Source of the DNA: Rebecca billardiae RCC1528
Taxonomy: Eukaryota > Protista > Haptophyta
Assembly (NCBI GenBank): GCA_965240325.2
Contig: OZ251235.1
Location: forward strand, 1,674,001-1,738,000
Direction: 5' to 3'
DNA: 64,000 nt
The notes under the pieces were generated by a model. The model saw only the letters and a list, made by a program, of their open reading frames with translations. It searched no databases and was not told the origin of the DNA. Below are positions 28,761-62,300 of this stretch, piece by piece. The stretch's first letter is position 1. Each line of letters starts with the position of its first letter. A program made the position numbers and the translations under genes.

Positions 28761-28922
28761 CCGGACCAATTCTATGATTTAAAGACACAGGCACGAGGGC
28801 GCAGCTCTCCTGATTCGTCTGTAGTGGTACAGTTTACTAAGAATAAGAGACGCACACAGCTCAGGCAGGCGAGATTGACGCCCGCCAACTGTCACCGCCC
28901 ATGAAGTACTGGTCGAAGCTTG
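28761..28922 (-). mobile_element. 83-bp 3' fragment of LINE family A, interrupted by a 75-bp family-B 3' fragment (28831-28905)
   Basis: 28761-28830 plus 28910-28922 equals the reverse complement of 40494-40576. The insert is identical to ~58524-58598 and is flanked by GTAC on both sides. Confidence 0.9.
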
Positions 28923-44309: not shown

Positions 44310-46331
44310 CTAGAGCGCATTGTCATTCCATCCAATCATGAGTAGTGCGTCCAATCTAGTCCAAGTGCGCGGCAACCCGCGCGAGGCGTGTGAGGTCGAA
44401 CGGCCCAGATCGCGTAGGTACGGGCCTAGCTCCAAGCGCGCCGGAACCCGCGAGACGCTTGAGGTCCCATGGCGGCCGCAGCGACAGACTGCGGCGATCA
44501 GCGCGGCGGCGCTGCCGAGGCCGGCGAGCAGCAGGATGGTATCCCACGCGCTGTGCCACGGCGTGACGTGCGCGGCATCGCAGTCAGCGGGCTGCGCCGT
44601 CGCACCGGCTGCCTGCGCGCGCTGGGACCCAGCCGCAGCCGCCTCGGCGGCAGGCCGTCCCGCGGCGCTCTCGTGCTCGCGCACCGCCGGGCTGCCGCCA
44701 GCCTGGCTCGGCTCGTCCGCTGGGGCGGCGCACAGCAGCGACAGGCCCAGATGAGTGAGCAGCCCACGCGGCGCGCCGCCCAGCTGCGCAGTGCCCGAGG
44801 GCCTGCCGCCGCACGGCTGCACCAAGCGCGAGCTGCGCGCGTGGTCTGCGCGCACGACGCGCACGCGCGGGAGCGACGGCACGCCCACAGGCTCGTAGTA
44901 GTCATCCCCAACGTCCCGCAGCAGCTGCATGCCGAGGCCAAGGGCGGCGCACGACTGGCCGCACACGTACACGCCACCGTCAGCGTCGACGAGCGCTGCG
45001 TATGAGCCTGCGCTCGAGGCGCTCACGATGTGCCTGGGCGAGTCCAAGCGCGCGGGCGTGTGGGCGTACCGATCGAACGTCCCGAGCTGCCCACACTCGC
45101 CGCGGCCCCACGAGAAGGCGAAGCCGTCGGCGCTGACCGCAAACGCGGTGCCTTCGCCCGCGCACGCGCGCACCACACACACGCCCTCCAGCGCGCCGCG
45201 CACGCGCGTGGGCCACGTCGCCTCCTCCACGCCGTGGCCCAGCCCGAGGGCCGCGGTCTCCTCGTTCGCGCCGAATGCGTACAGCGCGCCCAGCGCGTCG
45301 ACTGCCAGGCTGTACGAGCTCGCCGCGCTCACGTGCACGATGCGCACGCCCGCCAGCGCCTCGACTCGCGTGGGCACGCTCACGTGCGCACACGACGCGC
45401 CGAGCCCGAGGTGCGTGCCTGCGTGGCCGAACGAGTACAGCGCGCCCGCGGCCGAGAGGGCGAGGCTGTGGAAGTGGCCCGCCGCGAGGCCGACGACGCG
45501 CACGCCCTCGAGCGCCCTCACAGCGCGCGGCGAGGGGCAGCCACGCGTGCGCTCTGGGCCGAGCCCCAGCTGGCCTTCCCGCCTGCGGCCCCAGCCAAAG
45601 ACGTGTCCGCTCCGCGTGAGAGCGAGGGAGTGCAGCATGCCCGCCGCGACGCAGACGACGTGCACCTTGGCGAGTCCGGCCACGCGTGTCAGCTCGGGCA
45701 GCCAGAGCGAGCTGTTCGCCGAGCCCACGCCCAGCACGCCCGATCGGTTCAGCCCGGTCACGTACACGCCGCCCGCCTCACAAGTGGCGAGCAGGTGGTG
45801 CACGCTGGCGGAGACGGAGAAGATGCGCACGCCCGGGGGCAGCGGCACCGGCCGCGGCACGCGTAGCTCGTGCCCATCCAGCTCCTCCGCGGTGCCCAGA
45901 TGCGACGGCTGGGAGATCGTCGGGAGGGCGTCGATCGCCTCGGGGTACGTCCTCACCGCGCCGCACGTGCGCAGCGCGCCATCGGCGCACACGAACGCGC
46001 TCAGGGCCCACGTGACGCCGGGCAAGCCCTCGCGTGGGCCCTGGCTCGCCGTCGCAACCACGCTCGCGTGTGCGCACGCGCCGCGCCACACGCGCTCACG
46101 CCCGAGCAGGACCTCCGTCCACGTCGAAGCGCCTCTCGGGAGCACCGCGGTGTGCAGGCCATGCCCGCGCGCGTGCTGCCGCACGCGCAGCGCGCGCTCG
46201 ACGGGCGAGGGCTCGCCTGCTCCGCCCCGAAAGATGCGCGACGCCGCGTTGGCGCACGCGACGTCCTCAACGTCGTCGAGAGTGCAAAGGATGTGCTCGA
46301 TCAGCACCGACGGCAGGTCGGTGAGCGCCAT
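44310..46331 (-). CDS. F-box-like plus RCC1-repeat protein
   Basis: LTDLPSVLIEHILCTL N-terminus; repeated VAAGxxHSLAL...[WF]GxxxxGQLG. Confidence 0.75.
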   Translation of the reverse strand: MALTDLPSVLIEHILCTLDDVEDVACANAASRIFRGGAGEPSPVERALRVRQHARGHGLHTAVLPRGASTWTEVLLGRERVWRGACAHASVVATASQGPREGLPGVTWALSAFVCADGALRTCGAVRTYPEAIDALPTISQPSHLGTAEELDGHELRVPRPVPLPPGVRIFSVSASVHHLLATCEAGGVYVTGLNRSGVLGVGSANSSLWLPELTRVAGLAKVHVVCVAAGMLHSLALTRSGHVFGWGRRREGQLGLGPERTRGCPSPRAVRALEGVRVVGLAAGHFHSLALSAAGALYSFGHAGTHLGLGASCAHVSVPTRVEALAGVRIVHVSAASSYSLAVDALGALYAFGANEETAALGLGHGVEEATWPTRVRGALEGVCVVRACAGEGTAFAVSADGFAFSWGRGECGQLGTFDRYAHTPARLDSPRHIVSASSAGSYAALVDADGGVYVCGQSCAALGLGMQLLRDVGDDYYEPVGVPSLPRVRVVRADHARSSRLVQPCGGRPSGTAQLGGAPRGLLTHLGLSLLCAAPADEPSQAGGSPAVREHESAAGRPAAEAAAAGSQRAQAAGATAQPADCDAAHVTPWHSAWDTILLLAGLGSAAALIAAVCRCGRHGTSSVSRVPARLELGPYLRDLGRSTSHASRGLPRTWTRLDALLMIGWNDNAL

Positions 46332-49300
46332 GAGTTCGAAGTTGAAAGTGCAGGCCGTTCGACTGCTCACCGTCGTCGCGACTCTTTGTCGCGACCAACA
46401 GGGGTGCCTCAAACCAAGGGAGTCAAGGGTGCCCGCGCCCCAGTGGCGCGCTCGCCGGATGTGAGGATACACCTTTTTGCCCGCGGCCTGCGGCGGGCGG
46501 CGGCGAGGGCGTGCTCCGCTGGCGGGGCGAGCGCACGGGGCACGGCGCTGCGGGCGCGGATGTGCCCGCGAAGCCGGCGCGTGCAGACGGGCTGTTGCGG
46601 GAGAGTATTCGGCGCCGCGCGACTTGCGCCACGCCTCTTTCGCCTCGGCTCAGAGCAGCGCGCACGCACGCGCCGCCTCAAGGCCAGCCTTGCCGCGCCG
46701 CAGCCGGCCGCGCGCGCGCCGTGCGCGGCGCGGTCGGGAAGGAACGGGCGCTGCTGCCGGGCGAGATGGCAAAGGCATGTGCGCACGCCATGCCGCCCCG
46801 CGGCGCCTTGATGAGCGTGTCGTCGGTCTGTTTGCATGCCTCTTCGACTTGTCACAAATGGTGTGCACGGCTGCGCGGTCGTGACCCTTGTTGGGACGAT
46901 CATTGAGACACAGAATAGTGCCAGACGGGCACGCGGGCTACTCTTACATGCATGTTCATCACCGCGTGTTCATGTAGAAGTGCTGGGTGCGACGCTTTCC
47001 TCGCGCTGATGCTCTTTCATCATCTTCTGCGAGCTCAGGTCTGGCTTCGTGCACGACAAGTGATCAGCACTCGTCAACAGCTGTGCGGATCCGTTCTCGT
47101 GCTCTTTCGCGGCGCCGCGGGGCGGCATGGCGTGCGCACATGCGTTTGCCATCTCGCCCGGCAGCAGCGCCCGTTCCTTCCCGACCGCGCCGCGCACGGC
47201 GCGCGCGCGGCCGGCTGCGGCGCGGCAAGGCTGGCCTTGAGGCGGCGCGAGCGTGCGCGCTGCTCTGAGCCGAGGCGAAAGAGGCGTGGCGCAAGTCGCG
47301 CGGCGCAGGAGGGCGCCGAATACTCTCCCGCAACAGCCCGTCTGCACGCGCCGGCTTCGCGGGCACATCCGCGCCCGCAGCGCCGTGCCCCGTGCGCTCG
47401 CCCCGCCAGCGGAGCACGCCCTCGCCGCCGCCCGCCGCAGGCCGCGGGCAAAAAGGTGTATCCTCACAAGCGGTCCTTGTTCCTTGTTCGCCGCATGATT
47501 GTAGTATGTTATGCCCACTGCTACGCAGTCACCAGATCGGCGACGTCGTCGACAGTTGGGATACCTCCAAGTGGAGGCCCGAGTGGTTGCAGCCCACTGT
47601 GCCACCAGGGTACTTGCGGCTGCGACGTGTTTGCCGCGCTGACGTTCCCCGCACACAGTAACCGCCCACCCGGGCGCGGACGCACTGCCCACAGTGCCGC
47701 CCGCGAGCCAGGGGCCCGCCGTCTCGGACCGCCAGCCGAAGCGCATGCGCCGGACCGGAGCTGCAACTACGCAGGGCCCTGCGCAGAGCCCCAGCCGGCC
47801 ACCTTGTACAGCAGAGGTGGTAGGAGCACATCCTGCACAATGCAGGGAATTCCGGCTCGGGCAGACTGCCCCTTCTGCATGCTGCTGCAGGAAACCGTGC
47901 GCCGACTGCCGCACGGGCGACTGCCGCACGTCCAGCATTGCAGGAAAGCAGCGGCTCCAGCCAAGCCGGGCAGCTGCCCCGTGACCTGCAGCAGGAAACC
48001 GCGCGTGCCGGTGTAACGAGCAGGCTCTGCTGCATGCTGCAGCGACCTCGGTCTGCAGAGGGCTTGCTGGGCTCTTGACACGAGGCACGAGGCACGATGC
48101 TCTCCAGCTGGCGTCTTGGCCAGCAGCATCTGCACCTGCTGCGGCCTGGCGGGCCGCTGGGGGAGGGTCGTAGCAGAACCCCCTTCCTGTGCCAGCTCCG
48201 AGAGCCTCAGGTCTGTCGTTCAGTGCGAGTGCACGACCCTGCACGGGCTCCAGCGGCCTGCGGGCCGGGTTCCGCGCCGGCTGGGCTGCTGCCCCTTCTG
48301 CACGCTGCAGGAAAGTCGCTCGGGCTGGGCTGCTGCCCGTCTGCATGAGCAGGAAGGCAGCTCGGGTTGACCGCCCCTTCTGCATACTGCTGCAGGAAAT
48401 CACATATGCCTGTGTTGCCTGGCCGCTGCCTGCGGGTAGTGGCGCCTGCTGCGTGTTAGCCCCGGCAAGGCGAGTGCGATGTGCCGCGCCGTCTAGGCTG
48501 CGGCCCCTTGTGCATGCTGCAGGAAAGCAGCTCGGGCTGGCAGCTGCCTGCGGGCAGCGGCGCCTGCGGAGTGCTAAACCCTTACACTGCGAACGCGATG
48601 TTCCGCGCCGGCTGGGATGTGGCCCCTTCTGCATGCTGCAGGAAAGCCGCTCAGGCTGGGCTGCTGCCCCCTCTGCATGCTGCAGGAAAGCCGCTCGCGG
48701 GCTGGCAGCTGCCTGCGGGCAGCGGCGCCTGCGGAGTGCGAAGCCTTTGACACGCCGAACGCTATGTTCCGCGCCGGCTGGGCTGCGGCCCCTTCTGCAT
48801 GCTGCAGGAAAGCCGCCCGGGCTGTACACGGCTACACGCCCACGGCGAGCGCGAGTTCCGCTCTGGCTGGGATGCTGCCCCTTCTGCATGCTGCAGGAAA
48901 GCCGCTCGGGCTGGCAGCTGCCGGCGGGCAGCGGCGCCTGCAGAGTGCTAAGCTCTTGACACTGCAAGCGCGATGTTCCGCGCTGGCTGGGCGGCTGCCC
49001 CTTCTGCATACTGCAGGAAAGCCGCTCGGGCTGGCTGCCCTTCTGCATGCTGCTGCAGGAAATCGCATCACAATGATGCCTGTTTTGTAAGGCTGCTGCC
49101 TGCTGGCAGTCGCGCTTGCGGCTGCGGTTTGCTGAGCCAGGGGCTCGACACTGCCAGCGCGATGTGCAGCGCCGGCTGGGCAGCTGCCCCTTCTGCATGC
49201 TGCAGGAAAGCCGCTCGGGCTGGCGGCTGCCTGCGGGCAGCGGCGCCTGCGAAGTGCTAAGCCCTCGACACTGCGAGCGCGTGTTCGGCGCCGGCTGGGC

Positions 49301-49784
49301 TGCTGCCCCTTCTGCATGCTGCAGGAAAGCCGCTCTGGCTGGGCTGCTGCCCCTTCTGCATGCTGCAGGAAAGCCGCTCTGGCTGGGCTGGGGCCCCTTT
49401 GCATGCCTCAGTGCTGCAGGAAATCACACATGCATGCCTGTGTTGCCTGGCAGCTGCCTGCTGGAAGCGGCGCCTGCGGAGTGCTAAGCCCTTGACACTG
49501 CGAACGCGATGTTCAGCACCAGCTGGGCTGCGGCCCCTTCTGCATGCTGCAGGAAAGCAGCTTGGGCTGTACACTGCAAGCGCGAGTTCCGCGCCGGCTG
49601 GGCTGCTGCCCCTTCGCCTGCTGAAGGACAGCCGCTCCGGCTGGGCTGCTGCCCCTTCAGCATGCTGCAGGAAAGCCTCTCTCGGGCTGGCAGCTGCCCG
49701 CGGGCAGCGGCGCCTGCAGAGTGCTAAGCTCTTGACACGGCGAGCGCGAGTTCCGCGCCGGCTGGGCTGCTGCCCCTTCTGCAT

Positions 49785-52700
49785 TGTCGAAGGGAATGAA
49801 GAGCCCGAAACGACTGAGCTAAATCGGTTCGCGCCAACCGATTTAGCTCAGTCGTTTCGGGCTCTTCATTCCCTTCGACATAACCGTAAGTCTCCTGTGG
49901 GACACCCCGCGAGGGGCTGTAGTCCCGTCCAGTGTTCTGACGGATTTGTTGTCGAGGTTTTTCTCTCCCCGCCTGGTCTTTCCCAGGTGTTCCACCCTGC
50001 GTGCTCGTCTGCTCTGTGGCTTCGTAGAGACTCCGTCTTTTGTGGGCGGTGAGCCCTTCTTTGCTGCTGTGGCTTTGTGAGGCTCTTTTTGTGTCTTTGT
50101 TGTTCACCCGGGCGACTGTACCCGGAGGTTGCGCGTCGCGGACCGTGCTCGTTTTTTCTGTCGTCGTCTTTCTTTGTCGGTCATCTTCTTCGTGCTCCCC
50201 TCTTTCGTTCGTCTTTTTGCCGACTCCTCGCTTTTCATTCCCCCCCGGAGCCGCGAGGCTCTCGCGAGGTCGAAAGCGCTTCGCGTGAAAGGCCAAGAGT
50301 TGCCCGCGTCGGTCGGTCGCTGGATTCGAACAGGTGACTTTACGGTTGACAATGCTGGGAGAACTTGGGCAAGGATGGAGACGACGAGAACAGCGGCAAG
50401 GACGTGAACGGCCATCAGCCCGCCCCAGTTGCTCCCCTCATTGGGTTGAAGCCAGGCGTGGCAGAGCGCGCGGCATTGCCGCGCTGCTCATCGGCGATCG
50501 CGCGCAAGCGCACGCCAGACTACCTCGCCGCTGCCCTGAGGGGCATGCAGGCTGAGAAGAACCGGCAAGGCGAGAAGCTCACGCTTCTCCGCAAGCCCAT
50601 CTCCAGCGCCTCCGGGCCTGGCAACATCGCTGACCTGAACTCAGGCAGCATCGTGTCGTATGCGCGCAATGCTGCATCGCACGCAAGGCCTCGAGCCGAC
50701 ATCAAGGATCACCTTGAGGAGGAGGTTCGCGCACAGCGCGGTGAGGAGGAGCGTTGCCGCTCGCATCCCCCGCCATCGCGCCACTCCATCCGCACGCACG
50801 TCGTTGCGCAGGGGATCTCAACAACTACCGCCCGGGACTCTGCGCCCGCGAGCGCGGTTCAAGAGCGCGCGGCTGAGAGCCCGCAGCTCAAGGAGTGCCT
50901 TGCGGCCTCCGAGTCATCGAACGAGGTCACCGAGCGTTCCGGGGCAGATGTAGCGCTCGACGCTGCTGCCGCTGATGCCGCTCCGACCGTCGAGGCCCTC
51001 GAGCCTGCCAACGCTGCTCGGCGTGCTGGCCTTCTGGCCGCCGCCAATGACAGCGCGGTCGTGACCGCAGTCAGTCTGCAGCCTCGCTCGCACGACTCTG
51101 TGTCTGAGTCTGACCGATCGAACGATGACATTAACACCGATGAGTGCGACGCAAACGACCTGTATGGTCTGGCAGAGCAAACTATGCTCCAAGATGCTAC
51201 GACACGTGACTCTGTCACAGCGAGCTCAAGCATCAAGTCAGCGGCCGCATTTATTATTGATGCGCCTGACCCAAACAAATACGTTTACCCCAAAATTACC
51301 AGCCTCACGATGGCTTCCGAAGCCGAGCTGCTCGCCACGAGCGACACAAGCAGCCGCGAGATGACCGCCGCAGAGACGGCAGAGTCCTCGTCTGGCACGT
51401 ATCGACTCGCGTCGAACGTAGGAAGCGCATGCGATGCAGGGGGGGCATCATACACCTGCTTGACGGCAAAGCCGCAGCAAAACCAAGTTGGCGAGCGCGA
51501 CGCGCGTGCGCATGCATCAGCTGCGTCAGCCATCACAACGCCACACTCTTGCAAGGAAGAGTATTCCGCCGAAGCTGCCGCGGATGCACATGCATCACCG
51601 CTGGACAGAACGAGCGTGAAGAAGCCCAAAGAAGGCACCACAGCCTCGACGAGGGTCACTCCTCGCTCGAAGGTAGAGCGCGAATCGCCACAGAGCGCGC
51701 GCGACACATCGACCAATGCACTTGAGTCGAAGAAACGTGACTGGATAGTCATCGAAGGAGGAGTCACAGACTCTAATCCAACCAAGAAGGAACGTGTGTT
51801 CATGGCACGCGAATCCTCGGCAGGAGTGGATACACCCGCCACACACAAGCTGACACAGTCGGCTCTGAAATCCAAGCGCGCGGTACACAGCGCGATACGG
51901 GATGCACTCGCAGAAGTGAGCACCTACTACAAGGGCAAATCCTCAGATGTCACACCGGACATAATGGAGCCCAAGGATAGCAAGCTATCCGGCTTTCAAC
52001 TCATTGCCAAAGACAAATGGGTGAAAGACGCAGCCAAAATCGATCCATACAAGGCTGACAACGCTGACGCCAACAAGATCGGATCGGTCTACGATCGATC
52101 TGCGGCAGCGATATTCAAGCAGCTGAAGGACTCTATCGAGCCTCAGTTATTCGCCTATCTGGAATCGAAGCTGCACATCAGCGATCCGAACAAGAACTAC
52201 TTGGATCTGGCGCTGCTGCTACAGATATTTGAGCGCGAGCTCAAGATCACAACTATGTCCGAACTCAGGGATGAATTCCTGAAGTTATACCCGACAAAGG
52301 TGTCGCCCATTGGCGCATCGGACATTATCAAGAAATCCGTCGAGCAAGTCCGCTCATCTCGATATGGGAATCTGGACGATGCTACGATGTTGGTCTTCAA
52401 GCTGTATAACAGCATGCACGACCATCCCCAAGTCTACGAGTCAGTTATCTCGCACTTCGGAGCGCTCACGCCCGAGCAATGTGTGGATAACACTGACCAG
52501 ATAATGGCCCAGATGGAAGATGCCTACAAACGGCACGGCTCAATGAAGCTACTCCATCAGAACAATACCAAGGGGAGAGAGACCGAAAATTATTCCAAGA
52601 TACGCCAAAATGCTGATTATCAGCAAGGCACGCGGCGACGCGGTGACTTTGAGGGCGCCGAAGTCTTCGCCGCTCAGGCCCAAAAGGCTCCAGCCAATGG

Positions 52701-53869
52701 CGAGAGCGGGCCGAATATCTCGGACACCGGCAAACGGTGCACTCACTGTGGTCTCAAGAACCATACTGCCCAGCAGTGTTGGAAGCTCCACCCAGAGCTA
52801 CGCCCCAAGGCCAACAATTACAACAAAGGCAAAAACAAGGGAGCCAACAAATTTCCCAAGGAGCGTATCCATTTCCTGGATATTCCTGCTCCGGATGCCT
52901 ATGATTGACTATCAAGGCAGGGCATGACCCAATAACAAGGTCCAAAATCAAGGCCAAAGAGTGAACACATGGTGCAAATAAGCCCAGGACTGACTCGGGT
53001 TACCCAAAACCGTCACACGGAAGTCCCAGCAAATGACCCGTATCCTGGCATTGGCAACCATTACTGACTCCAATTCACTCATGCACACAGATGCACAAAC
53101 AATACCATGCCCAAAATCACTCATAATCCAAGCTTAGTCCTCACAGACGAGCGCATATTGGATTGAGGGGGGGGGGGGGGGGGGTGTCAAAGGAATCGCC
53201 AATCTACAGTGATTTCCAATTTCCAATCCAACATTTTACTCGCAGTCACACAGTGGCGGCGCGACCGCTGCGGCGGCGCTCGCACAAAATCCTCCAAAAT
53301 CGACACAACCGTAAAGTCACCTGTTCGAATCCAGCGACCGACCGACGCGGGCAACTCTTGGCCTTTCACGCGAAGCGCTTTCGACCTCGCGAGAGCCTCG
53401 CGGCTCCGGGGGGGAATGAAAAGCGAGGAGTCGGCAAAAAGACGAACGAAAGAGGGGAGCACGAAGAAGATGACCGACAAAGAAAGACGACGACAGAAAA
53501 AACGAGCACGGTCCGCGACGCGCAACCTCCGGGTACAGTCGCCCGGGTGAACAACAAAGACACAAAAAGAGCCTCACAAAGCCACAGCAGCAAAGAAGGG
53601 CTCACCGCCCACAAAAGACGGAGTCTCTACGAAGCCACAGAGCAGACGAGCACGCAGGGTGGAACACCTGGGAAAGACCAGGCGGGGAGAGAAAAACCTC
53701 GACAACAAATCCGTCAGAACACTGGACGGGACTACAGCCCCTCGCGGGGTGTCCCACAGGAGACTTACGGTTATGTCGAAGGGAATGAAGAGCCCGAAAC
53801 GACTGAGCTAAATCGGTTGGCGCGAACCGATTTAGCTCAGTCGTTTCGGGCTCTTCATTCCCTTCGACA
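49785..53869 (+). mobile_element. Gag-only copia-like element with 564-bp inverted terminal repeats; TSD TGCAT
   Basis: TGT...ACA ends. 49785-50348 is the reverse complement of 53306-53869. A PPT (TTGAG+poly-G) precedes a 3' LTR at 53185-53869. Confidence 0.9.
50350..52908 (+). CDS. Ty1/copia-type Gag-like protein, 5'-truncated
   Basis: C-terminal CTHCGLKNHTAQQCWKLHPELRPK zinc knuckle. The frame is open up to the inverted-LTR junction and no pol follows. Confidence 0.8.
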   Translation, partial: QCWENLGKDGDDENSGKDVNGHQPAPVAPLIGLKPGVAERAALPRCSSAIARKRTPDYLAAALRGMQAEKNRQGEKLTLLRKPISSASGPGNIADLNSGSIVSYARNAASHARPRADIKDHLEEEVRAQRGEEERCRSHPPPSRHSIRTHVVAQGISTTTARDSAPASAVQERAAESPQLKECLAASESSNEVTERSGADVALDAAAADAAPTVEALEPANAARRAGLLAAANDSAVVTAVSLQPRSHDSVSESDRSNDDINTDECDANDLYGLAEQTMLQDATTRDSVTASSSIKSAAAFIIDAPDPNKYVYPKITSLTMASEAELLATSDTSSREMTAAETAESSSGTYRLASNVGSACDAGGASYTCLTAKPQQNQVGERDARAHASAASAITTPHSCKEEYSAEAAADAHASPLDRTSVKKPKEGTTASTRVTPRSKVERESPQSARDTSTNALESKKRDWIVIEGGVTDSNPTKKERVFMARESSAGVDTPATHKLTQSALKSKRAVHSAIRDALAEVSTYYKGKSSDVTPDIMEPKDSKLSGFQLIAKDKWVKDAAKIDPYKADNADANKIGSVYDRSAAAIFKQLKDSIEPQLFAYLESKLHISDPNKNYLDLALLLQIFERELKITTMSELRDEFLKLYPTKVSPIGASDIIKKSVEQVRSSRYGNLDDATMLVFKLYNSMHDHPQVYESVISHFGALTPEQCVDNTDQIMAQMEDAYKRHGSMKLLHQNNTKGRETENYSKIRQNADYQQGTRRRGDFEGAEVFAAQAQKAPANGESGPNISDTGKRCTHCGLKNHTAQQCWKLHPELRPKANNYNKGKNKGANKFPKERIHFLDIPAPDAYD

Positions 53870-55975
53870 TGCATACTGCACGAAGGCCGCTCGGGCTGGC
53901 TGCCCCTTCTGCATGCTGCTGCAGGAAATCGCACCACATGCCTGTTTTGCCAGGCTGCTGCCTGCAGGCAGCCGCGCTTGCGGCTGTGGTTTGCTGAGCC
54001 AGGGGCTCGACACTGCGAGCGCAATATGCCGTGCCGGCTGGGCAGCTGCCCCTTTCTGCATGCTGCAGGAAAGCAGCTCGGGCTGGCAGCTGCCTGCGGG
54101 CAGCGGCGCCTGCGGAGTGCTAAGCCCTCGACACTGTGAGCGCGTTGTTCGGCACCGGCTGGGCTGCTGCCCCTTCTGCATGCTGCAGGAAAGCCGCTCT
54201 GGCTGGGCTGGCGGGGCCCCTTCTGCATGCCTCAGTGCTGCAGGAAATCACACATGCATGCCTGTGTTGCCTGGCAGCTGCCTGCGGGCATCGGCGCCTG
54301 CGGAGTGCTAAGCCCTTGACACTGCGAACGCGATGTTCAGCACCAGCTGGGCTGCGGCCCCTTCTGCATGCTGCAGAAAAGCAGCTCGGGCTGTACACGG
54401 CAAGCGCAAGTTCCGCGCCGGCTGGGCTGCTGCCCCTTCGCCTGCTGAAGGACAGCCGCTCTGGCTGGGCTGCTGCCCCTTCTGCATGCTGCAGGAAAGC
54501 CTCTCTCTGGCTGGCAGCTGCCGGCGGGCAGCGGCGCCTGCAGAGTGCTGAGCTCTTGACACGGCGAACGCGAGTTCCGCGCCGGCTGGGCTGCTGCCCC
54601 TTCTTCATACTGCAGGAAGGCCGCTCGGGCTGGCTGCCCCTTCTGCATGCTGCTGCAGGAAATCGCATCACAATGATGCCTGTTTTGTAAGGCTGCTGCC
54701 TGCTGGCAGTCGCGCTTGCGGCTGCGGTTTGCTGAGCCAGGGGCTCGACACTGCCAGCGCGATGTGCAGCGCCGGCTGGGCAGCTGCCCCTTCTGCATGC
54801 TGCAGGAAAGCCGCTCGGGCTGGCGGCTGCCTGCGGGCAGCGGCGCCTGCGAAGTGCTAAGCCCTCGACACTGCGAGCGCGTGTTCGGCGCCGGCTGGGC
54901 TGCTGCCCCTTCTGCATGCTGCAGGAAAGCCGCTCTGGCTGGGCTGCTGCCCCTTCTGCATGCTGCAGGAAAGCCGCTTGGGCTGGCAGCTGCCTGCTGG
55001 CAGCGGCGCCTGCGGAGTGCTAAGCCCTTGACACTGTGAACGAGATGTGCCGCGCCGGCTGGGCTGCTGCCCCTTCACCGCGCCGGCTGGGCTGCTGCCC
55101 CTTCACCTGCTGAAGGAAAGCCGCTCGGGCTGGGCTGCTGCCCCTTCTGCCTGCTGCAGGAAAGCCGCTCGTGGGCTGGCAGCTGCCTGCGGGCAGCGGC
55201 GCCTGCGGAGTGCTAAGCCCTTGACACTGCAAGCGCGTTGTTCGGCGCCGGCTGGGCTGCTGCCCCTTCTGCATGCTGCAGGAAAGCCGCTCTGGCTGGG
55301 CTGCTGCCCCTTCTGCCTGCTGCAGGAAAGCCGCTCGTGGGCTGGCAGCTGCCTGCTGGCAGCGGTGCGTGCTGAGTGCTAAGCTCTTGACACGGCGAGC
55401 GCGATGTTCCGCGCCGGCTGGGCTGCTGCCCCTTCTGCATACTGCAGGAAAGCCGCTCGGGCCGGCTGCCCTTCTGCATGCTGCTGCAGGAAATCGCATC
55501 GCCTGCGGCTGCGGTTTGCTTAGCCAGGGGCTTGACACTGCACGTGCAATGTGCCGCGCCGGCTGGGCCGCTGCCCCTTCTTCCGCATGATGATGCAGGG
55601 AAGCCGCTCGGGCTGACTGCACTTTCTGCATGCTGCTGCAGTAAATAAGGCACGCCTGTGTTGCTTGGCAGCTGCCTGCTGGCAGCTGCGCCTGTGGTGT
55701 GCTGAGCCCTTGGCACTGTGAGCGCGATGTTCCGTGCCATTGCAGGGCAGCTGCCCCTTCCTCTGCATGATCGATGATGCAGGAAATTAGCTCGGGCTGG
55801 CTGCCCCTTCTGCCTCCTGCTGCAGGCGATCACGCATGCCTGTGTTGCCCTGCAGGCAGCTGCCTGTGGGCAGCGGCGCCTGCAGCTTGCAGGGCCCTCG
55901 AAACTGCGATCGCAGTGGTTCCTTGCCTGATTAGCGGCTTTGCACAGCCGAATGCCAGCGTCGGTTGCAACTTGT

Positions 55976-56165
55976 GACTCCGACCCGTCATCGCTCCGAC
56001 CCGTCATCGCTCCTCCGACCAGTCATCGCCTTGCCACTCTCCGACCTCAAACCCCCACCTTCGACCTGGAAGACTCGCCCTGCCTCCGACCCGTCATCGC
56101 GCTCCGACCCGCCATTGCGCCTCCAACCAGTCATCGCCTCACCACTCTCCGACCTGCCTCCGATG
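55976..56165 (+). repeat. Short degenerate repeats (CTCCGACCCGTCATCGC)
   Basis: Several imperfect copies visible. Confidence 0.75.
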
Positions 56166-57598
56166 CGCCAACGTCGTCATCTCCTTCGTCAGCAAAGACA
56201 ATATGAGGCCCTCAGGCCATGCTCAAGCACACACTCGCGCCATCGGCATCTTGGAGTGAGCTGCTCGCTGGCGCCCAACCAGTGCCCTGTGTCGACTGCC
56301 TGCTGGCAGTGAGAGAGCCACCCTTGCGGTGGTAGTGCATAGCCAGCACTGGTGTCAGCTCCTGCTGGGGCCAGTGGTGAGCACCCTCAGCTGCTTGCCT
56401 GGTAGTCAGGGTGGGTGGGTGGGAGGATTTGCCACAATGAATGCCCTTTGCTGCTGCGGCGCTGCGTGCCGCCATTTGCGGCAACCTCGTGCCTGCTGCT
56501 TGGGGCGATAATCGCTGAGCTCTGGGCTCTGAGTCCTGCTGCTCCGGATTCTGCGGCTGGATTTGCACAGCGCTTGCGTCTCCAGTACATTGCGGACCCC
56601 TTGTGAGCTTCGCGCCAGACCCACCAAACCAACTGCACAACACAAGCGGTCCTTGTTCCTTGTTCGCCGCATGATTGTAGTATGTTATGCCCACTGCTAC
56701 GCAGTCACCAGATCGGCGACGTCGTCGACAGTTGGGATACCTCCAAGTGGAGGCCCGAGTGGCTGCAGCCCACTGTGCCACCAGGGTACTTGCGGCTGCG
56801 ACGTGTTTGCCGCGCTGACGTTCCCAATCGTTCCACAGGGGCGTCGGGTGGCTGTGCTTGTAGGGTCGGGGACCGTAATCCGTATCCCAACTGCATGATG
56901 CGCACGGTGGCGGTGTTCGTTTTTCGATTGCTTTGCTGCCTTTGGCTTTGACGACGACGAGGCAGGCGTTGAGCGGCCTCTCGGCTGCTGCAAGGGCCTT
57001 GGCTGCGGCCTACCGGCACTGCCTGTGCTGCCTGGCAGGCCAGTGCGCTGATAGCAACGTAGCGGCCCTGCTGTATACCCAGGTTCCAGCAAGTAAGCGG
57101 CGGTGCAGGCCTGCTGGTCTCCAGCGGCCTGCTCAGGCCTAATTAGCAAGGCAGGCTCTGCCGGCCTTGCCCGTATGCTGCAGTGCCAAGTGGATCTGCC
57201 TGCTGCAGCCAGCGGGCTTGCGCCTTGCTGCTCGGCGGAGCTGCCTCACTGCACGGCGAGCGCCGGACGGACAGCCATGGTCCGCACCGGCTGGGCATCC
57301 ACCCCTTCTGCATGACGATATGCAGGAAATCCGCGTATGCCTTATTGGGCGGCTGATGAATGCACCTTTCGCGTAGTACTGCTAGTGCAAGTACTATTGA
57401 TGCTTAGCAGGAAGTCACACATGCCTGTGTTAGGTGTTGCCTGGCTGCTGCCTGCGGGCACAAGCGGCACCTGCAGCGTGCTAAGCCCTTGCCTCGACGG
57501 CCTGCGGGCCGGAGGACGGTGGAGGACGCTTGCGAGTCCTGGGCAAGGCTCAGGCGGAGCTCTTGCGGGCCGGGTTCTAGGGCCCGGCGGGCCGCAAA

Positions 57599-58036
57599 GA
57601 GCAGCCTCGACGGCCGCAGGCCGGAGGACGGTGGAGCAGAGCAGCCTCGACGGCCGCGGGCCGGAGGACGGTGGAGCAGAGCAGCCTCGACGGCCGCGGG
57701 CCGGAGGACGGTGGAGCAGAGCAGCCTCGACGGCCGCTGGCCGGAGGACGGTGGAGCAGAGCAGCCTCGACGGCCGCTGGCCGGAGGACGGTGGAGCAGA
57801 GCAGCCTCGACGGCCGCGGGCCGGAGGACGGTGGAGCAGAGCAGCCTCGACGGCCGCTGGCCGGAGGACGGTGGAGCAGAGCAGCCTCGACGGCCGCGGG
57901 CCGGAGGACGGTGGAGCAGAGCAGCCTCGCCGGCCACTGGCCGGAGGACGGTGGAGCCGAGCAGCCTCGACGGCCGCGGGCCGGAGGACGGTGGAGCAGA
58001 GCAGCCTCGACGGCCGCTGGCCGGAGGACGATGGAG
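57599..58036 (+). repeat. Tandem array, 11 x 40 bp (GAGCAGCCTCGACGGCCGC[GT]GGCCGGAGGACGGTGGAGCA)
   Basis: Counted directly. It lies between A2 and B2. Confidence 0.95.
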
Positions 58037-58522
58037 GACGTTTGCGAGTCCTGGGCAAGGCTCAAGCGGAGCTCTTGACACGTGCGCGATGACGAAGGCC
58101 TGCGGGCCTTTGGGAGCCTCCCTCGCCGCGCGAGAGGGTCTGAGCAATGCACGAGCGCCTGGCAGCGCTCGGTGCGGCGGCCGTGGGCCGAGAGAGCTGT
58201 TGAGGGGGGGGGCTGCTGCGGGCTGGGCTGCAGCCCCTTCTGCCTGCTGCAGGAAGCCGTGCGGGCTGGGCTGCGGCCCCTTCTGCATGCTGCAGGAAAG
58301 CCGCTCGGGCTGACTGGGCACCTGCCACTTCTGCACGCTGCTGCAGGAAATCACGCATGCCTCAGGATTTGCCACAATGAATGCCCTTTGCTGCTGCGGC
58401 GCTGCGTGCCGCCATTTGCGGCAACCTCGTGCCTGCTGCTTGGGGCGATAATCGCTGAGCTCTGGGCTCTGAGTCCTGCTGCTCCGGATTCTGCGGCTGG
58501 ATTTGCACAGCGCTTGCGTCTC

Positions 58523-58951
58523 CAGTTTACTAAGAATAAGAGACGCACACAGCTCAGGCAGGCGAGATTGACGCCCGCCAACTGTCACCGCCCATGAAGC
58601 CGTCGCCGATGGTAGCGCCGCCGGAAAAATTCGTTCAGCCGTCCGCCTGCGAGGCCTGGATGAGGGCTGCGGCCGCCTCGCGGCGCGCCAGCGCCCGTCG
58701 TCCTCGCCCCACCGTCGTCCACAAAACGTCGTCGTCCGAACTCGCCGACTGGGCGCCGATGCGACAGCGCGCCGACAGGATGAGGATGTAGTAGGGAATG
58801 TAGAGCCCCACTGTCAGTTGGGGAAGGTGTGTATCAAGCGGCATGACTGGGGTAGCTTATCACACAGAAGGCCCGGCCCTCAGGTGATATGTGCCCCAGT
58901 GTGGCGTGTCGGCCTCAAAGCCGGCGGCAGGGTTCTGTGGCCCGGAGCAGG
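58523..58951 (-). mobile_element. ~430-bp 3' fragment of a second LINE-like family (B) inserted in repeat B2
   Basis: Absent from B1 (tccagtacattg). Its terminal ~76 bp are identical to 28830-28906. Confidence 0.8.
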
Positions 58952-59327
58952 GTACATTGCGGACCCCTTGTGAGCTTCGCGCCAGACCCACCAAACCAAC
59001 TGCACAACACATCCGGCGAGCGCGCCACTGGGGCGCGGGCACCCTTGACTCCCTTGCTCAAACCGTCGTCGTCGTGCCGGGCTGCAGCCGCCGCGGCGAA
59101 GCCTCGCATTTGAATTTATTGACGAAATGATTCGCAATAATAACGACAATCGTCGGAAGGCGCGGCGCATCATCGTGATCGGCGCACAACGGGCATGCGC
59201 GGTGTCATCCCAGGAGTGATGACACTAGGGCTCTGTGCGATGACGGACAGATCCACAGATGACCGGCTAGCACGCGGACAAGCTGACGGCCCCGGCTCGC
59301 CGCAGGCCGGCCAAAGGGGCGGTTCGG

Positions 59328-62300
59328 TCACATTGGTGGCGAGGGCCGACGCGGGCCGCCCGACCCCACGCGTCCCGAGCCCGGGCGTCGAGCGCCCGAG
59401 GCTGGCCGGCTGCCTGGCCGGCTGCTGCCGCCGGATGGCTGGCGCTCGACGAGCGGCAGACCGCCCGAGTTCTGCCGCTCGAGCAACTGGCCGGTGTTCT
59501 GCCGCGAGAGCGGGGATGACGGCGTGTAGGTGCTCCCGCGCCGACTCGGCGCCATCGACTGGCGGCGCGACGAGTAGTTGCTGCCGCCCGGCGAGCCGCC
59601 GCTCGCCGCGATGTCGTGCAGCGTGCGCACGGACCGCACGGACTGCCTGCGCGAGGGCGCGGCGGACTGCATCGGCGTCTCGCGCGGCGTCTTGAGCTCG
59701 AACGCCGCGTTCGAGGTGTCGAGCATCGGCGAGCGCGGCCGCGGCGCCGGCCGTGGGGGCGGCGCGGTCGCGAGCTGGCGCGCGCGGTCGAGCAGCGCGT
59801 ACACGCGCCGCCAGTAGCGCTCCGACTGAGGCAGCTCAGAGTACTTGAGGATGTCGTTGTGCGCGCGGTACTTGCGCGCGGGCAGGTGCACGAGCTCGCC
59901 CGTCAGCGCGCGGAACAGCCACCGCCCGAGCCGCGCGCACGTCGGCTGCGCGAACGCGACCTTCTGCGAGGGCGCGGCGTCGTCGCCGGCCGCCGACTCG
60001 CGCTCGGCGTCGCTGGCCGTGTTGGCAAGCGCTTCCGATCGGCGCAGCACGCGAAGCACCTCGTGCCTGCGCAGCTGCAGCATCGGCGGCAGATACGCGA
60101 GCTGCGGCGGCGCCGTGCCCGAGCCCGCCGCCTGCGCCTCCGCGGTCGACCATCGGAAGAGCAGCCGCTCCTCCAGCTGCAGCCGCGCCGTCACGTTCTC
60201 GCGGTAGAGCTTGAGTTGGTTGCGCAGCGCGTTCTCCGACGCGATGCGCTTCGCGCGCGCCTTGAGCCACTGGTTCCGCCTGCGCGCCCACTGCGACTCG
60301 AGCCTCGGCATCACGAAGCGGTGCTTCCACGCGTCCAGGATGGCTGCCTGCTGCCGCAGCGAGTACACCGTCTTGTACACGCGGTACGCGTCCTCGCCCT
60401 GCGCGCCCGCGAAGACGGACAGGCAGATGGCAAGCGTGCGCAGCCGGCGCCACGCCGACCACGCCGCTTGGATCTCGCGCTTCGAGATGCGCCCCTGCGT
60501 GTACTCGAGCCAGCGCGCGAAGATGGCGTGCGGGGACTCGGGGCGCACGCCGTACCGCAGCAGCTCGGAGAAGGCCGAGTAGAGCTTGCGGCGCCTGCGC
60601 GGCGGCGGGCGGCGGAGGCGCGCGAGGGCGAGGGCGAGGGCACGCGGCGTGAGCGGCGGCGGCGCTCCACCAGGCACACCGCGGATCCACCCGCCTTGGG
60701 TGACTGCCGATGGCTTGCTCGGGCGACTGCCGCGCGCGGCGCGCGCGCTCGGCACCTCGGCAGCATGTGCGCGTAGTGCGGCGGGATGAGCTGGTACCGC
60801 TCGTCGATGAAGTAGAGCCACTTGGTGAAGCACTTCCAGCGCAGCTTCATGCGGTAGTAGAGGTGCATGCCGCGGTACAGGTACATCAGCCGGTGGCAGA
60901 TTGTGAGCCAGCGGCGGATGCGGCGCTTGACTGCGAACCGGTGCGCGAGCCGCAGCCGCTGGGTGAGCGCGAGCGCGTCGAAGCACTCGCGCGCAGACTT
61001 CCACACGCGCTGCTCCTCCAGTGCCTGCGCGCGCGCCGTCGCGAAGGGCGAGGGCGCCGCCGCGGCGGCTCAGGCGTCACGCGCGCACAACAGCCCGCGC
61101 GCGCGCGCACGCCCGGGCGCGCCCCCGCCTCTGCCGCTGCACGCGCTGCTGCGCAGTCGCGCGTGGACGTGGCGGGCGCTCGCGCGCACACGCGCCGCGC
61201 CGCTTGCGCACGGGCGCACCCGCGCACGCGTCGCACGCGCACGCCGCGCACGCGCGCCCACCTCGTCCACGCGCCTGTACGTCTCCTTGAGGTACAGGTG
61301 CCGCTCGTCGCGCAGCCGGCGCACACGCTCGCGTTGCTCCCAGATGAGGTCGGAGTCGCCCTCGCGCGCCCACAGCAGAGCGGTCGCCACGTCTCGCTCG
61401 CGCTGCGCGCGGTCCTGCTGCGCGCCCCACGCGCTCTGCTGCCGCTCCGTCGCCTGCGCCGCAAGCAACACGCGCTTGGCGATCACGAGCTGCTTCTCCG
61501 CCACCGCCGCCGCCTTGAGCCGGTCGATTCTGTCGAGGTACGCGTCCGCCACCTGCTCCTTTGAGCGGTCGCCGACGCCCTCGACCGACGAGTCCGAGTC
61601 CGAGTCGGAGGCGTTGGCCGCGTCGGCGGACGCGCCCCCGGGCTCCGCGCCGGACGACGTGTCAGGCTGCGCACCGGCGCCGCCGCCCGCGCCGCCGCCG
61701 CCGCCGCCGAGGCCGCCGCCGCCGCCGCCCGCATTTTCATCGATCATCATCTCGAGCATGGCCATCCGCGCGGCGCGCCGTCGGACGAGGTCGCGCCGCA
61801 TCGTCGCTCGGCGCCGCAGGTGCCGCTGCAGCTCGAGCGACTCCTCGTCGTCGGCCGAGACCGACGCCATCGCGGCGGAGACGGCGGCGGTCAGCTGCTG
61901 CGCCGCGAGTCGGCTCTGCCGCCGCTCCTCCGGCGGCCGGCCGAGCGCATAGGGGTCCTCGCTGTCGGTGCCCACCGCCGCGGCCGCGGCGAGCGCGAGC
62001 TCAGCGTCCTCGGCAGCGGGCGCGCCGGCGGGCGCGTCGGCGTCGGCGTCGGCGGCGGGCGCGTCGGCGTCGGCTCCGGCGGGCGCGCCGTCCGCGTCCG
62101 CGCCGGGCGCCGCCGCGGGCGCGCCCGCCGCCGCGGGCGCGCCCGCCGCGGGCGCGCCACCGTGTGCGCCCTCCTCGCCGTCGCCGCCTTCGGAGGTCGG
62201 GCGCGGCTCGGCGGCGCTTGCCTCGAGGCTGGCCGCCTGCCGCGCGGCGCGCAGCTGCCGCGCGTGCCTGCGCTTGAGGAAGTACCCCTGCGAGGTGATG

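Follow-up and report, generated by a model that had tools for sequence, protein, structure and literature searches.

The DNA between positions 47465 and 59011 of the 64,000-nucleotide stretch of Rebecca billardiae RCC1528 that we analyzed (the window) is best explained as a non-autonomous tyrosine recombinase (YR) retroelement with split direct repeats. It would belong to the DIRS order, with the layout of the PAT, Toc, Ngaro and VIPER elements and a TOC1-like way of working, and we place the probability of this interpretation at roughly 0.7. The element is a clean instance of a type known since TOC1, and not a new class. Within the DIRS order, the arrangement A1...B1A2...B2 of split direct repeats is diagnostic of YR retroelements, and this is the arrangement observed here, with B1 abutting A2.

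The split layout proposed in an earlier note on this DNA was borne out base for base; we place A1 at 47469–47649, B1|A2 at 56424–56825 and B2 at 58364–59007, with all of the element's own parts lying on the forward strand. A1, the 5′ terminal repeat (a short-A variant), is preceded by a CACA at 47465–47468 that could belong either to the element or to its target; counted with these bases, A1 (47465–47649) matches A2 (56641–56825) over 185 nt with 1 mismatch. The body of the element, X, follows A1 in two parts, at 47650–49784 (a unique head, 47650–48260, and then a satellite) and at 53870–56423 (satellite to ~55600, and then a unique tail), the satellite having a basic unit of 44 bp and higher orders of ~120–209 bp. 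B1 (56424–56644) ends in ...cacaa-CACA and is directly followed by A2 (56645–56825), which has one private C at 56763, where T is present in every other copy and in the public run. A spacer, Y, of ~1.5 kb (56826–58363) separates A2 from B2 and is composed of a unique head, an array of 11 units of 40 bp (57598–58036) and 2–3 units of the 44-bp motif of X. The canonical Ngaro layout, B1A2B2, has no such spacer, an observation that counts against the preferred reading. B2 is likewise in two parts. The first (58364–58526) is 100% identical to B1 (56424–56586) across 163 nt, and the second (58952–59007) ends in ...ctgcacaa and is followed by the CACA of the right junction (59008–59011), with the match to B1 here pairing 56585–56649 with 58952–59016.

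The canonical element is ~7.03 kb in length, and the present copy is longer by two later insertions. That within X (49785–53869; no strand assigned) is 4,085 bp long, foreign to the family and absent from all other copies; its ends are TG...CA and perfectly inverted over 564 bp, and it shows a 5-bp duplication, TGCAT. That within B2 (58527–58951, reverse strand) is a fragment of 425 bp from a tail-less retroelement family, inserted at a GTAC site with a duplication of GT.

The three junctions, which were read directly, have exactly the letters reported in the earlier note: atcct-CACA-agcgg on the left, cacaa-CACA-agcgg between B1 and A2 (CACA at 56641–56644) and cacaa-CACA-tccgg on the right. 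The B1|A2 junction did not differ between any copies. The element was inserted into a MITE-like transposon of ~1.1 kb with terminal inverted repeats (TIRs), of which the genome has at least 40 copies. Its left arm (46415–46807) holds the empty counterpart of the target site (~46455–46468), its right arm extends from 47111 to the insertion point at 47464, and the remainder of that arm (59012–59056) is followed by a 7-bp host duplication, CTCAAAC; none of these parts was assigned a strand. The right arm matches the left arm over 47111–47473, and the match resumes at 59008–59056. In reverse complement, the left arm reads atcct-CACA-tccgg, that is, the empty site, as had been claimed, and the same sequence is present in an intact paralogous copy of the host (L069) whose right arm is uninterrupted. 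In at least 38 paralogous copies of the host the insertion site carries no insert, and contigs from a public low-depth run confirmed paralogous empty host sites. Based on the empty site and the junctions, the insertion added exactly the element and one CACA, without a target-site duplication, and the two products are those of a junction recombined with a target. One locus therefore displays the donor junction alongside the unoccupied target and the two products, as the earlier note had proposed.

The proposal that CACA is a general core did not hold, as CACA is present on both sides only in the present copy. The flanking 4-mers of other copies were CCCG/CAGA, CACA/CAAA and CTCA/CAGA. No matching flank 4-mers were found around the other copies, so there is no sign there of a target duplication, and a 4-bp CACA duplication was rejected both on this basis and because the internal junction itself bears CACA. 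The 3′ end of the family does not vary (14/14), and the 5′ end varies slightly (ACA in 10/13). The constant bases, ACA|AGCGG on the left and ...CACAAC-A on the right, are the element's own, and the sequence common to element and target shrinks to about one A. Given the base composition, the probability of a CACA target by chance is ~0.003; in the present copy, the target in the TIR would by coincidence have agreed with the junction at all four bases. As a single empty site has been verified (on the other arm of the host, together with L069), the crossover rule is derived from flank statistics, a point against the preferred reading. Further empty sites were sought among the available loci and none was usable; the copy on C13 lies within a short-motif repeat and its flanks do not fix the exact insertion site. 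A Helitron was also considered and rejected, as the ends of the element, ACAAGCGG ... CACAACA, and its verified target, C|ACA, do not resemble the 5′-TC...CTRR-3′ ends of those transposons and their insertion between A and T.

Genome-wide analyses revealed that the element is a young mobile unit. Four full copies (the present locus and those on C32, C13 and C5) are 99.4–99.8% identical and have unrelated flanks; a fifth, older full copy is on C7, and the other members of the family are three 5′-truncated copies, solo AB units and deletion derivatives. A search that had been suggested for the order A1-X-B1A2-Y-B2 at other sites found it as a unit at five or more other loci. That the copies are immobile, and result from segmental duplication or assembly artefacts, has no specific support and next to no likelihood, as all of the copies end at the same two bases, in unrelated flanks and on different contigs; the junction data refute it, and the more than 38 paralogous host copies that have no insert also speak against it.

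Solo AB units, which have been reported to be left by Ngaro elements (PMC8547959) and are expected from recombination, were found at C8:507023-507455 and C7:2194166-2194649, with the joint between A and B falling precisely on the borders of the repeats, and an A|B joint is also carried by a contig of the public run, X1. At ~430–480 bp these units resemble solo LTRs, and the element could be imagined as a degenerate LTR retrotransposon (LARD- or TRIM-like) in which AB is the LTR and an integrase carried out the insertion. We consider this highly improbable. The verified site has no 4–6-bp duplication, and the idea is contradicted by the empty site; the ends are ACA...ACA and not TG...CA, the left end consists of A alone, and B1 precedes A2. 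The nested 4,085-bp insert provides a contrast, as it does have TG...CA ends and a 5-bp duplication. Membership of the LARD or TRIM groups was rejected, as identical LTRs, TG...CA termini and a 4–6-bp duplication were all lacking in the element.

The 5′-truncated copies are pertinent to another alternative, that the family is moved by target-primed reverse transcription driven by a LINE and owes its split-repeat appearance to a tandem duplication that subsequently spread. Target-primed reverse transcription would also account for these three copies and for a 3′ end that is precise where the 5′ end is slightly ragged, and to that extent these features count against the preferred reading; moreover, tail-less LINE families are active in the genome. 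However, A and B had no similarity to the LINE termini within the window, the verified insertion has neither a target duplication nor a target deletion, and solo AB units and an exact B1|A2 abutment would be unexpected, so that we regard the LINE alternative as very unlikely.

The two A repeats of each copy have evolved in concert. Every copy of the short subfamily shows a 23–25-bp indel of A in A1 as well as in A2, and the copy on C7 shows it in neither, as is expected if one template rebuilds both repeats in each cycle. This has bearing on whether the element moves as DNA, with a YR excising and reinserting it in the manner of a Crypton, or amplifying a circle, and with A-X-B|A-Y-B representing two units, each bounded by A and B, that were placed head to tail by integration of one circle at another's end. 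The structure can indeed be read as two units with identical ends, C34 carries a derivative with one unit only, A-(X tail)-B, and insertion without a target-site duplication at a short base in common is compatible with such movement, as is the failure to find an RT partner with these ends. Yet neither A-X-B nor A-Y-B was found intact as a separate unit, and every Y is preceded by B1A2; the indel common to A1 and A2 points to regeneration of the repeats; 5′-truncated copies exist; and the layout is that of YR retroelements, of which there are RT-coding examples in the same genome. Movement as DNA is therefore, in our opinion, unlikely.

As the earlier note had stated, the element has no RT or recombinase of its own. 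Pfam searches of 57 stop-free frames and of the long ORFs identified no RT, RNase H or YR, tblastn of the element with four resident element proteins found nothing, and no Rfam families or tRNAs were detected in the region. Because these genes are absent, the element can be filed only as a non-autonomous derivative. Such a derivative would be expected to have a coding partner with the same ends, and it had been suggested that a partner with RT, RNase H and YR be sought. Mapping of A-starts with a 20-mer pattern (3 mismatches allowed) identified 26 in the assembly; all 26 were accounted for, and none lay close to any of the 55 best RT hits or any of the 5 YR hits. Similarly, when A, B, the head and tail of X and the head of Y were compared with the genome by BLAST, no master with these ends was found, and no relatives of X or Y outside the family. 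The exact A-start pattern had no match in metagenome contigs, and A and B had no similarity to the ends of two coding split-repeat families, so that ends homologous to those of a coding element were not found in the assembly. That no autonomous element with A or B was found counts against the preferred reading.

The genome does hold coding split-repeat families with the layout A1-ORF-B1A2-spacer-B2 and short junction bases in common with their targets. Two of these, the C33-type (with a YR) and the C16-type (RT only), resemble the present element in layout, including an A2–B2 spacer (435 nt and 61 nt, respectively), in their internal short tandem arrays and in their duplication-free insertion. 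They differ from it in having no sequence similarity to its A, B, X or Y, and in their junctions and targets (TA/AC repeats). One YR family was found in the genome, in 5 copies. That the junction sequence of this sole family is different, and that its copies are located in TA/AC microsatellites, is a further observation against the preferred reading.

Under the preferred reading, a YR retroelement served by enzymes in trans, replication would begin with transcription from A1 to B2 by a host polymerase, and a resident coding split-repeat element would provide the RT that copies the RNA. The direct joint of B1 and A2 within the element would then be used to rebuild and join the ends, producing a circle with the junction ...cacaa-CACA-agcgg.... 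Finally, a YR supplied in trans would catalyze strand exchange between the circle junction and a chromosomal site with one to a few bases in common, and the outcome would be insertion without a target-site duplication. The RNA intermediate, the circle and the identity of the acting enzymes are inferred; the indel common to A1 and A2 offers indirect support for the RNA and circle steps. The element was found in no RNA run, which counts against the preferred reading. A more tentative possibility is that the family is an orphan, which moved very recently (99.4–99.8% identity) through cross-mobilization by unrelated RT-only split-repeat elements and the single YR family, with all of its cis signals in the ~430-bp AB unit and one base in common with the target being enough. 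If so, the element would represent a minimal, marked-up substrate for the cis needs of YR retroelements.

YR retroelements are the least understood class of retrotransposons, and their circle and integration steps are largely a model. The value of this locus is that the donor junction and the empty target, the latter backed by dozens of paralogous controls, occur together with the two products. The rules can also be read from the family's full copies, its solo AB units and its deletion derivatives. The family-wide data correct the idea of a CACA core to approximately one base in common with the target, and the concerted evolution of the repeats agrees with what the replication model predicts.

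In comparison to DIRS-1, for which a rule of a junction trinucleotide has been described (PMC7192593), the present family usually has one base (A) in common with its target, and this copy four; its repeats are direct and not inverted, and it has no internal complementary region. In the VIPER/SIRE pair of Trypanosoma cruzi, the short non-coding SIRE corresponds to the A2-B2 region of VIPER (PMC6681497), and its counterpart here is the solo AB unit, although SIRE has a sequence-related autonomous parent in VIPER and none was found for the present element. The Ngaro elements of Cafeteria burkhardae (PMC8547959) have the arrangement A1-[body]-B1A2..B2, scattered solo AB units and insertions into other mobile elements, as does the present family, but they have genes for RT, RNase H and YR, with A2 directly next to B2, whereas the present element has no genes and has a spacer. 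A further close parallel is TOC1 of Chlamydomonas reinhardtii (Day et al. 1988, Day and Rochaix 1991, cited in PMC9940879 and PMC3623635), which is described in PMC9940879 as a non-autonomous DIRS element. The present element is in a different alga, has the 1.5-kb A2–B2 spacer, and has no related coding master that was found in the assembly; its array unit is 44 bp compared to the 76 bp given in the title on TOC1. The likeness is architectural only. As far as TOC1 is described in those sources, both elements are gene-less and mobile, have an unusual split arrangement of terminal repeats and an internal tandem array, and are believed to rely on DIRS relatives that do encode proteins.

Repeat scanning and direct reading of the window sequence bore out every part of the A1-body-B1A2-spacer-B2 order that an earlier note had proposed for the split-repeat element at 47465-59011. 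A1 (47465-47649) and A2 (56641-56825) are 185 nt repeats with one mismatch, B1 (56424-56649) runs into A2 without a gap, and B2 is the same repeat as B1 in two pieces (58364-58526 and 58952-59016). The junctions read identically to those in the note: atcct-CACA-agcgg on the left, cacaa-CACA-agcgg internally and cacaa-CACA-tccgg on the right. The window copy is 11.5 kb long, rather than the ~7.03 kb of the canonical element, because of two later insertions. The first (49785-53869; 4,085 bp), missing from all other copies, begins with TG, ends with CA and is bordered by a duplication of 5 bp, TGCAT. Its inverted ends match perfectly over 564 bp, each opening with a palindrome of ~96 nt, and it carries an 847-aa ORF at 50365-52908 for which Pfam gave no match; the extracted loci contained no further copy. 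The second (58527-58951; 425 bp), at a GTAC site inside B2 with duplication of GT, is a piece of a tail-less retroelement, and the first 73 nt of this insert are common to a terminus at 28834-28906. That terminus recurs at several further loci (L016, L017, L022, L060 and L062), and in L016, L017 and L022 it contains a fragment of A (~172 nt, then a few B-end bases), which, being present at three loci, was probably carried along by the spread of the retroelement family. Both the window copy and the C31 copy adjoin long ORFs free of introns (44310-46472 beside the former, L060:5537-7051 and L060:7415-9058 beside the latter, all minus strand) that contain RCC1-like repeats and, in some cases, match the F-box weakly.

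The split-repeat element interrupts the right arm (47111-47473 and 59008-59056) of a MITE-like TIR transposon, which occupies 46415-47464 and 59012-59056 and has its left arm at 46415-46807. This host is ~1.1 kb long, has arms of ~390 bp and comes with a duplication of 7 bp, which in the window reads CTCAAAC; it has at least 40 near-full copies of 94-99% identity that fall into two bands (98-99% and 94%). The empty site that the note had read on the opposite arm was confirmed: the unoccupied left arm, reverse-complemented, is atcct-CACA-tccgg. The right arm of an intact host copy (L069) is likewise uninterrupted through tatcct-CACA-tccgg, and at least 38 host paralogs have no break at this position. 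What was added is thus exactly the element and four further bases, with nothing duplicated and nothing lost. Derivation from an integrase-type LTR element is contradicted both by this empty site and by the end sequences, and we regard it as very improbable. One of ~80 equivalent host sites is occupied, and thus the extended host sequence is no strong target signal.

A failure of A and B to occur together elsewhere would, according to the note, have refuted its proposal; they clearly do occur together, and further full copies exist. Three of these (C32:923647-930757, C13:2048938-2055981 and C5:3091727-3098796) match the window copy at 99.4-99.8% and have unrelated flanks; simple duplication of non-mobile DNA is the least probable of the readings considered. 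An older full copy (C7:3065410-3077791) carries a longer variant of A, with a 4.4-kb insertion in A1 (C7:3065444-3069877; L025:1534 onward and L015 up to 1500) that is probably a DNA transposon; its ends are inverted (GTGTGCTTGGGCAA...), and a short sequence, TAGTA, is duplicated. Shorter members include solo AB units (C8:507023-507455 and C7:2194166-2194649), joined exactly at the repeat borders, and deletion derivatives on C34, C21 (514719), C18 (1095613), C3 (2782291) and C10 (1653618). The A-B joint was also found in a contig of the one public sequencing run that holds the element. Copies on C11, C1 and C31 are 5'-truncated. These three copies, together with an invariant 3' end and a slightly ragged 5' end, are what copying driven by a LINE might produce, but such copying is contradicted by how exact the insertion is, by the solo AB units and by the absence of a LINE-like 3' end, and we consider it highly unlikely. 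The starts of the independent C1 and C31 copies are at most 7 nt apart and lie ~200 bp upstream of B1 (L034:1296 and, in reverse, L060 ~6620; window equivalent 56221-56228); this near-coincidence could mark an internal transcript start. In the C11 copy, B2 (L047:1501-2574; C11:2747389-2748462) is interrupted by an insertion of ~840 bp, with B positions 110-120 (11 bp) duplicated at its borders.

The proposal of a CACA recombination core did not prove general. Paired flanks of the other full copies (CCCG/CAGA, CACA/CAAA and CTCA/CAGA) are unequal and never have CACA on both sides, which rules out both a strict CACA core and a 4-bp target duplication. Among 13 independent left junctions, 12 have CA directly before AGCGG; 10 of the 13 have A as the next base outward (p = 3e-6 given 17% A), and five have C one base beyond, with no enrichment (p = 0.46). 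At the right, CA follows ...CACAA in 14/14 junctions with variable bases beyond, a second CA coming next in only two. The constant bases are the element's own: its left end reads ACA-AGCGG and its right end ...CACAAC-A. Since these constant ends total five bases and the internal junction and verified insertion only four, one base, an A, must usually be shared with the target. In the window, the match of four bases represents the upper end of a range of microhomology. With one empty site verified, the exact crossover point is our inference.

The body, X, comprises a unique head (0.6 kb), a satellite of ~3.3 kb (44-bp unit, higher orders of ~120-209 bp) and a unique tail (0.8 kb). The spacer, Y (56826-58363), has a unique head, an array of 11 40-bp units and then 2-3 units of the 44-bp motif of X. 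The element is non-coding, as had been proposed: neither 57 stop-free frames of its non-satellite parts nor the long ORFs yielded a domain of RT, RNase H or a recombinase, four proteins from resident split-repeat elements used as tblastn queries gave no match over 46000-59500 or at any A/B-bearing locus, and no Rfam family or tRNA was detected in it.

The assembly (72 Mb, 41 contigs, G+C ~67%), whose contig C18 includes the window at 1674001-1738000, is that of a photosynthetic, intron-poor eukaryote, judging from its light-harvesting-protein loci, which number at least 50 and in many cases have a single exon. It holds coding split-repeat elements of the same layout, which are possible helpers. 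The C33-type, the only YR family detected, has five copies with flanks in TA/AC microsatellites and the order A1-ORF-tandem array-B1A2-435 nt-B2, its 1,286-aa ORF ending in the YR. The only Pfam match of this ORF (L066:4220-8080, minus strand) is an integrase model, and its RT is visible only through 28% identity to that of the C16-type and so is very divergent. The C16-type (4 kb) encodes RT only and has a 61-nt spacer. Separation of A2 from B2 by a spacer is thus a habit of this genome's families, not a peculiarity of the element studied here. None of A, B, X and Y has sequence in common with these families. The lack of any YR retroelement with the same ends, which the note had said would refute its proposal, holds as far as this assembly goes: all 26 starts of A belong to the listed copies or fragments, and none has an RT or YR match beside it. 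Metagenome contigs searched for the start of A gave no match.

Evidence on replication comes from a 23-25-bp segment of A that a short-A subfamily (window, C32, C13, C5 and C11) lacks and that is found in the solo units and in the copies on C7, C1 and C31. Wherever both are readable, A1 and A2 agree: the segment is missing from both in four full short copies and present in both in the C7 copy. Within the window copy B1 and B2 are identical, and the sole A1/A2 difference, a C at 56763, is private to it. Such concerted change is what the retroelement model leads one to expect, since there a single template serves to regenerate the repeats in every cycle. It is less expected under DNA copy-and-paste, and movement at the DNA level driven by a recombinase is unlikely; gene conversion may also produce concerted change. 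The 25-nt segment of long A contains a (TA)n tract, expanded to >100 nt in L022 (C7:600884-601131, reverse); other split-repeat families of this genome target TA tracts.

Overall, our data support a non-autonomous split-direct-repeat retroelement working like TOC1 (probability about 0.72). The locus is an unusually complete natural record, and corrects the idea of a CACA core. Also worth keeping are the concerted indel in A1 and A2 and the absence of a sequence-related master despite very recent activity. The element is a further example of an already known type. Its layout is the one by which PAT/Toc/kangaroo, Ngaro and VIPER elements are conventionally recognised (PMC4157794), solo AB units have been reported for Ngaro elements (PMC8547959), and SIRE is the counterpart of A2B2 of VIPER (PMC6681497). 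Compared with the junction trinucleotide of DIRS-1 (summarised in PMC7192593), the motif common to element and target has shrunk to ~1 base. TOC1 itself is an accepted non-autonomous DIRS element (PMC9940879) and, going by a title cited in PMC3623635, likewise has an internal tandem array.
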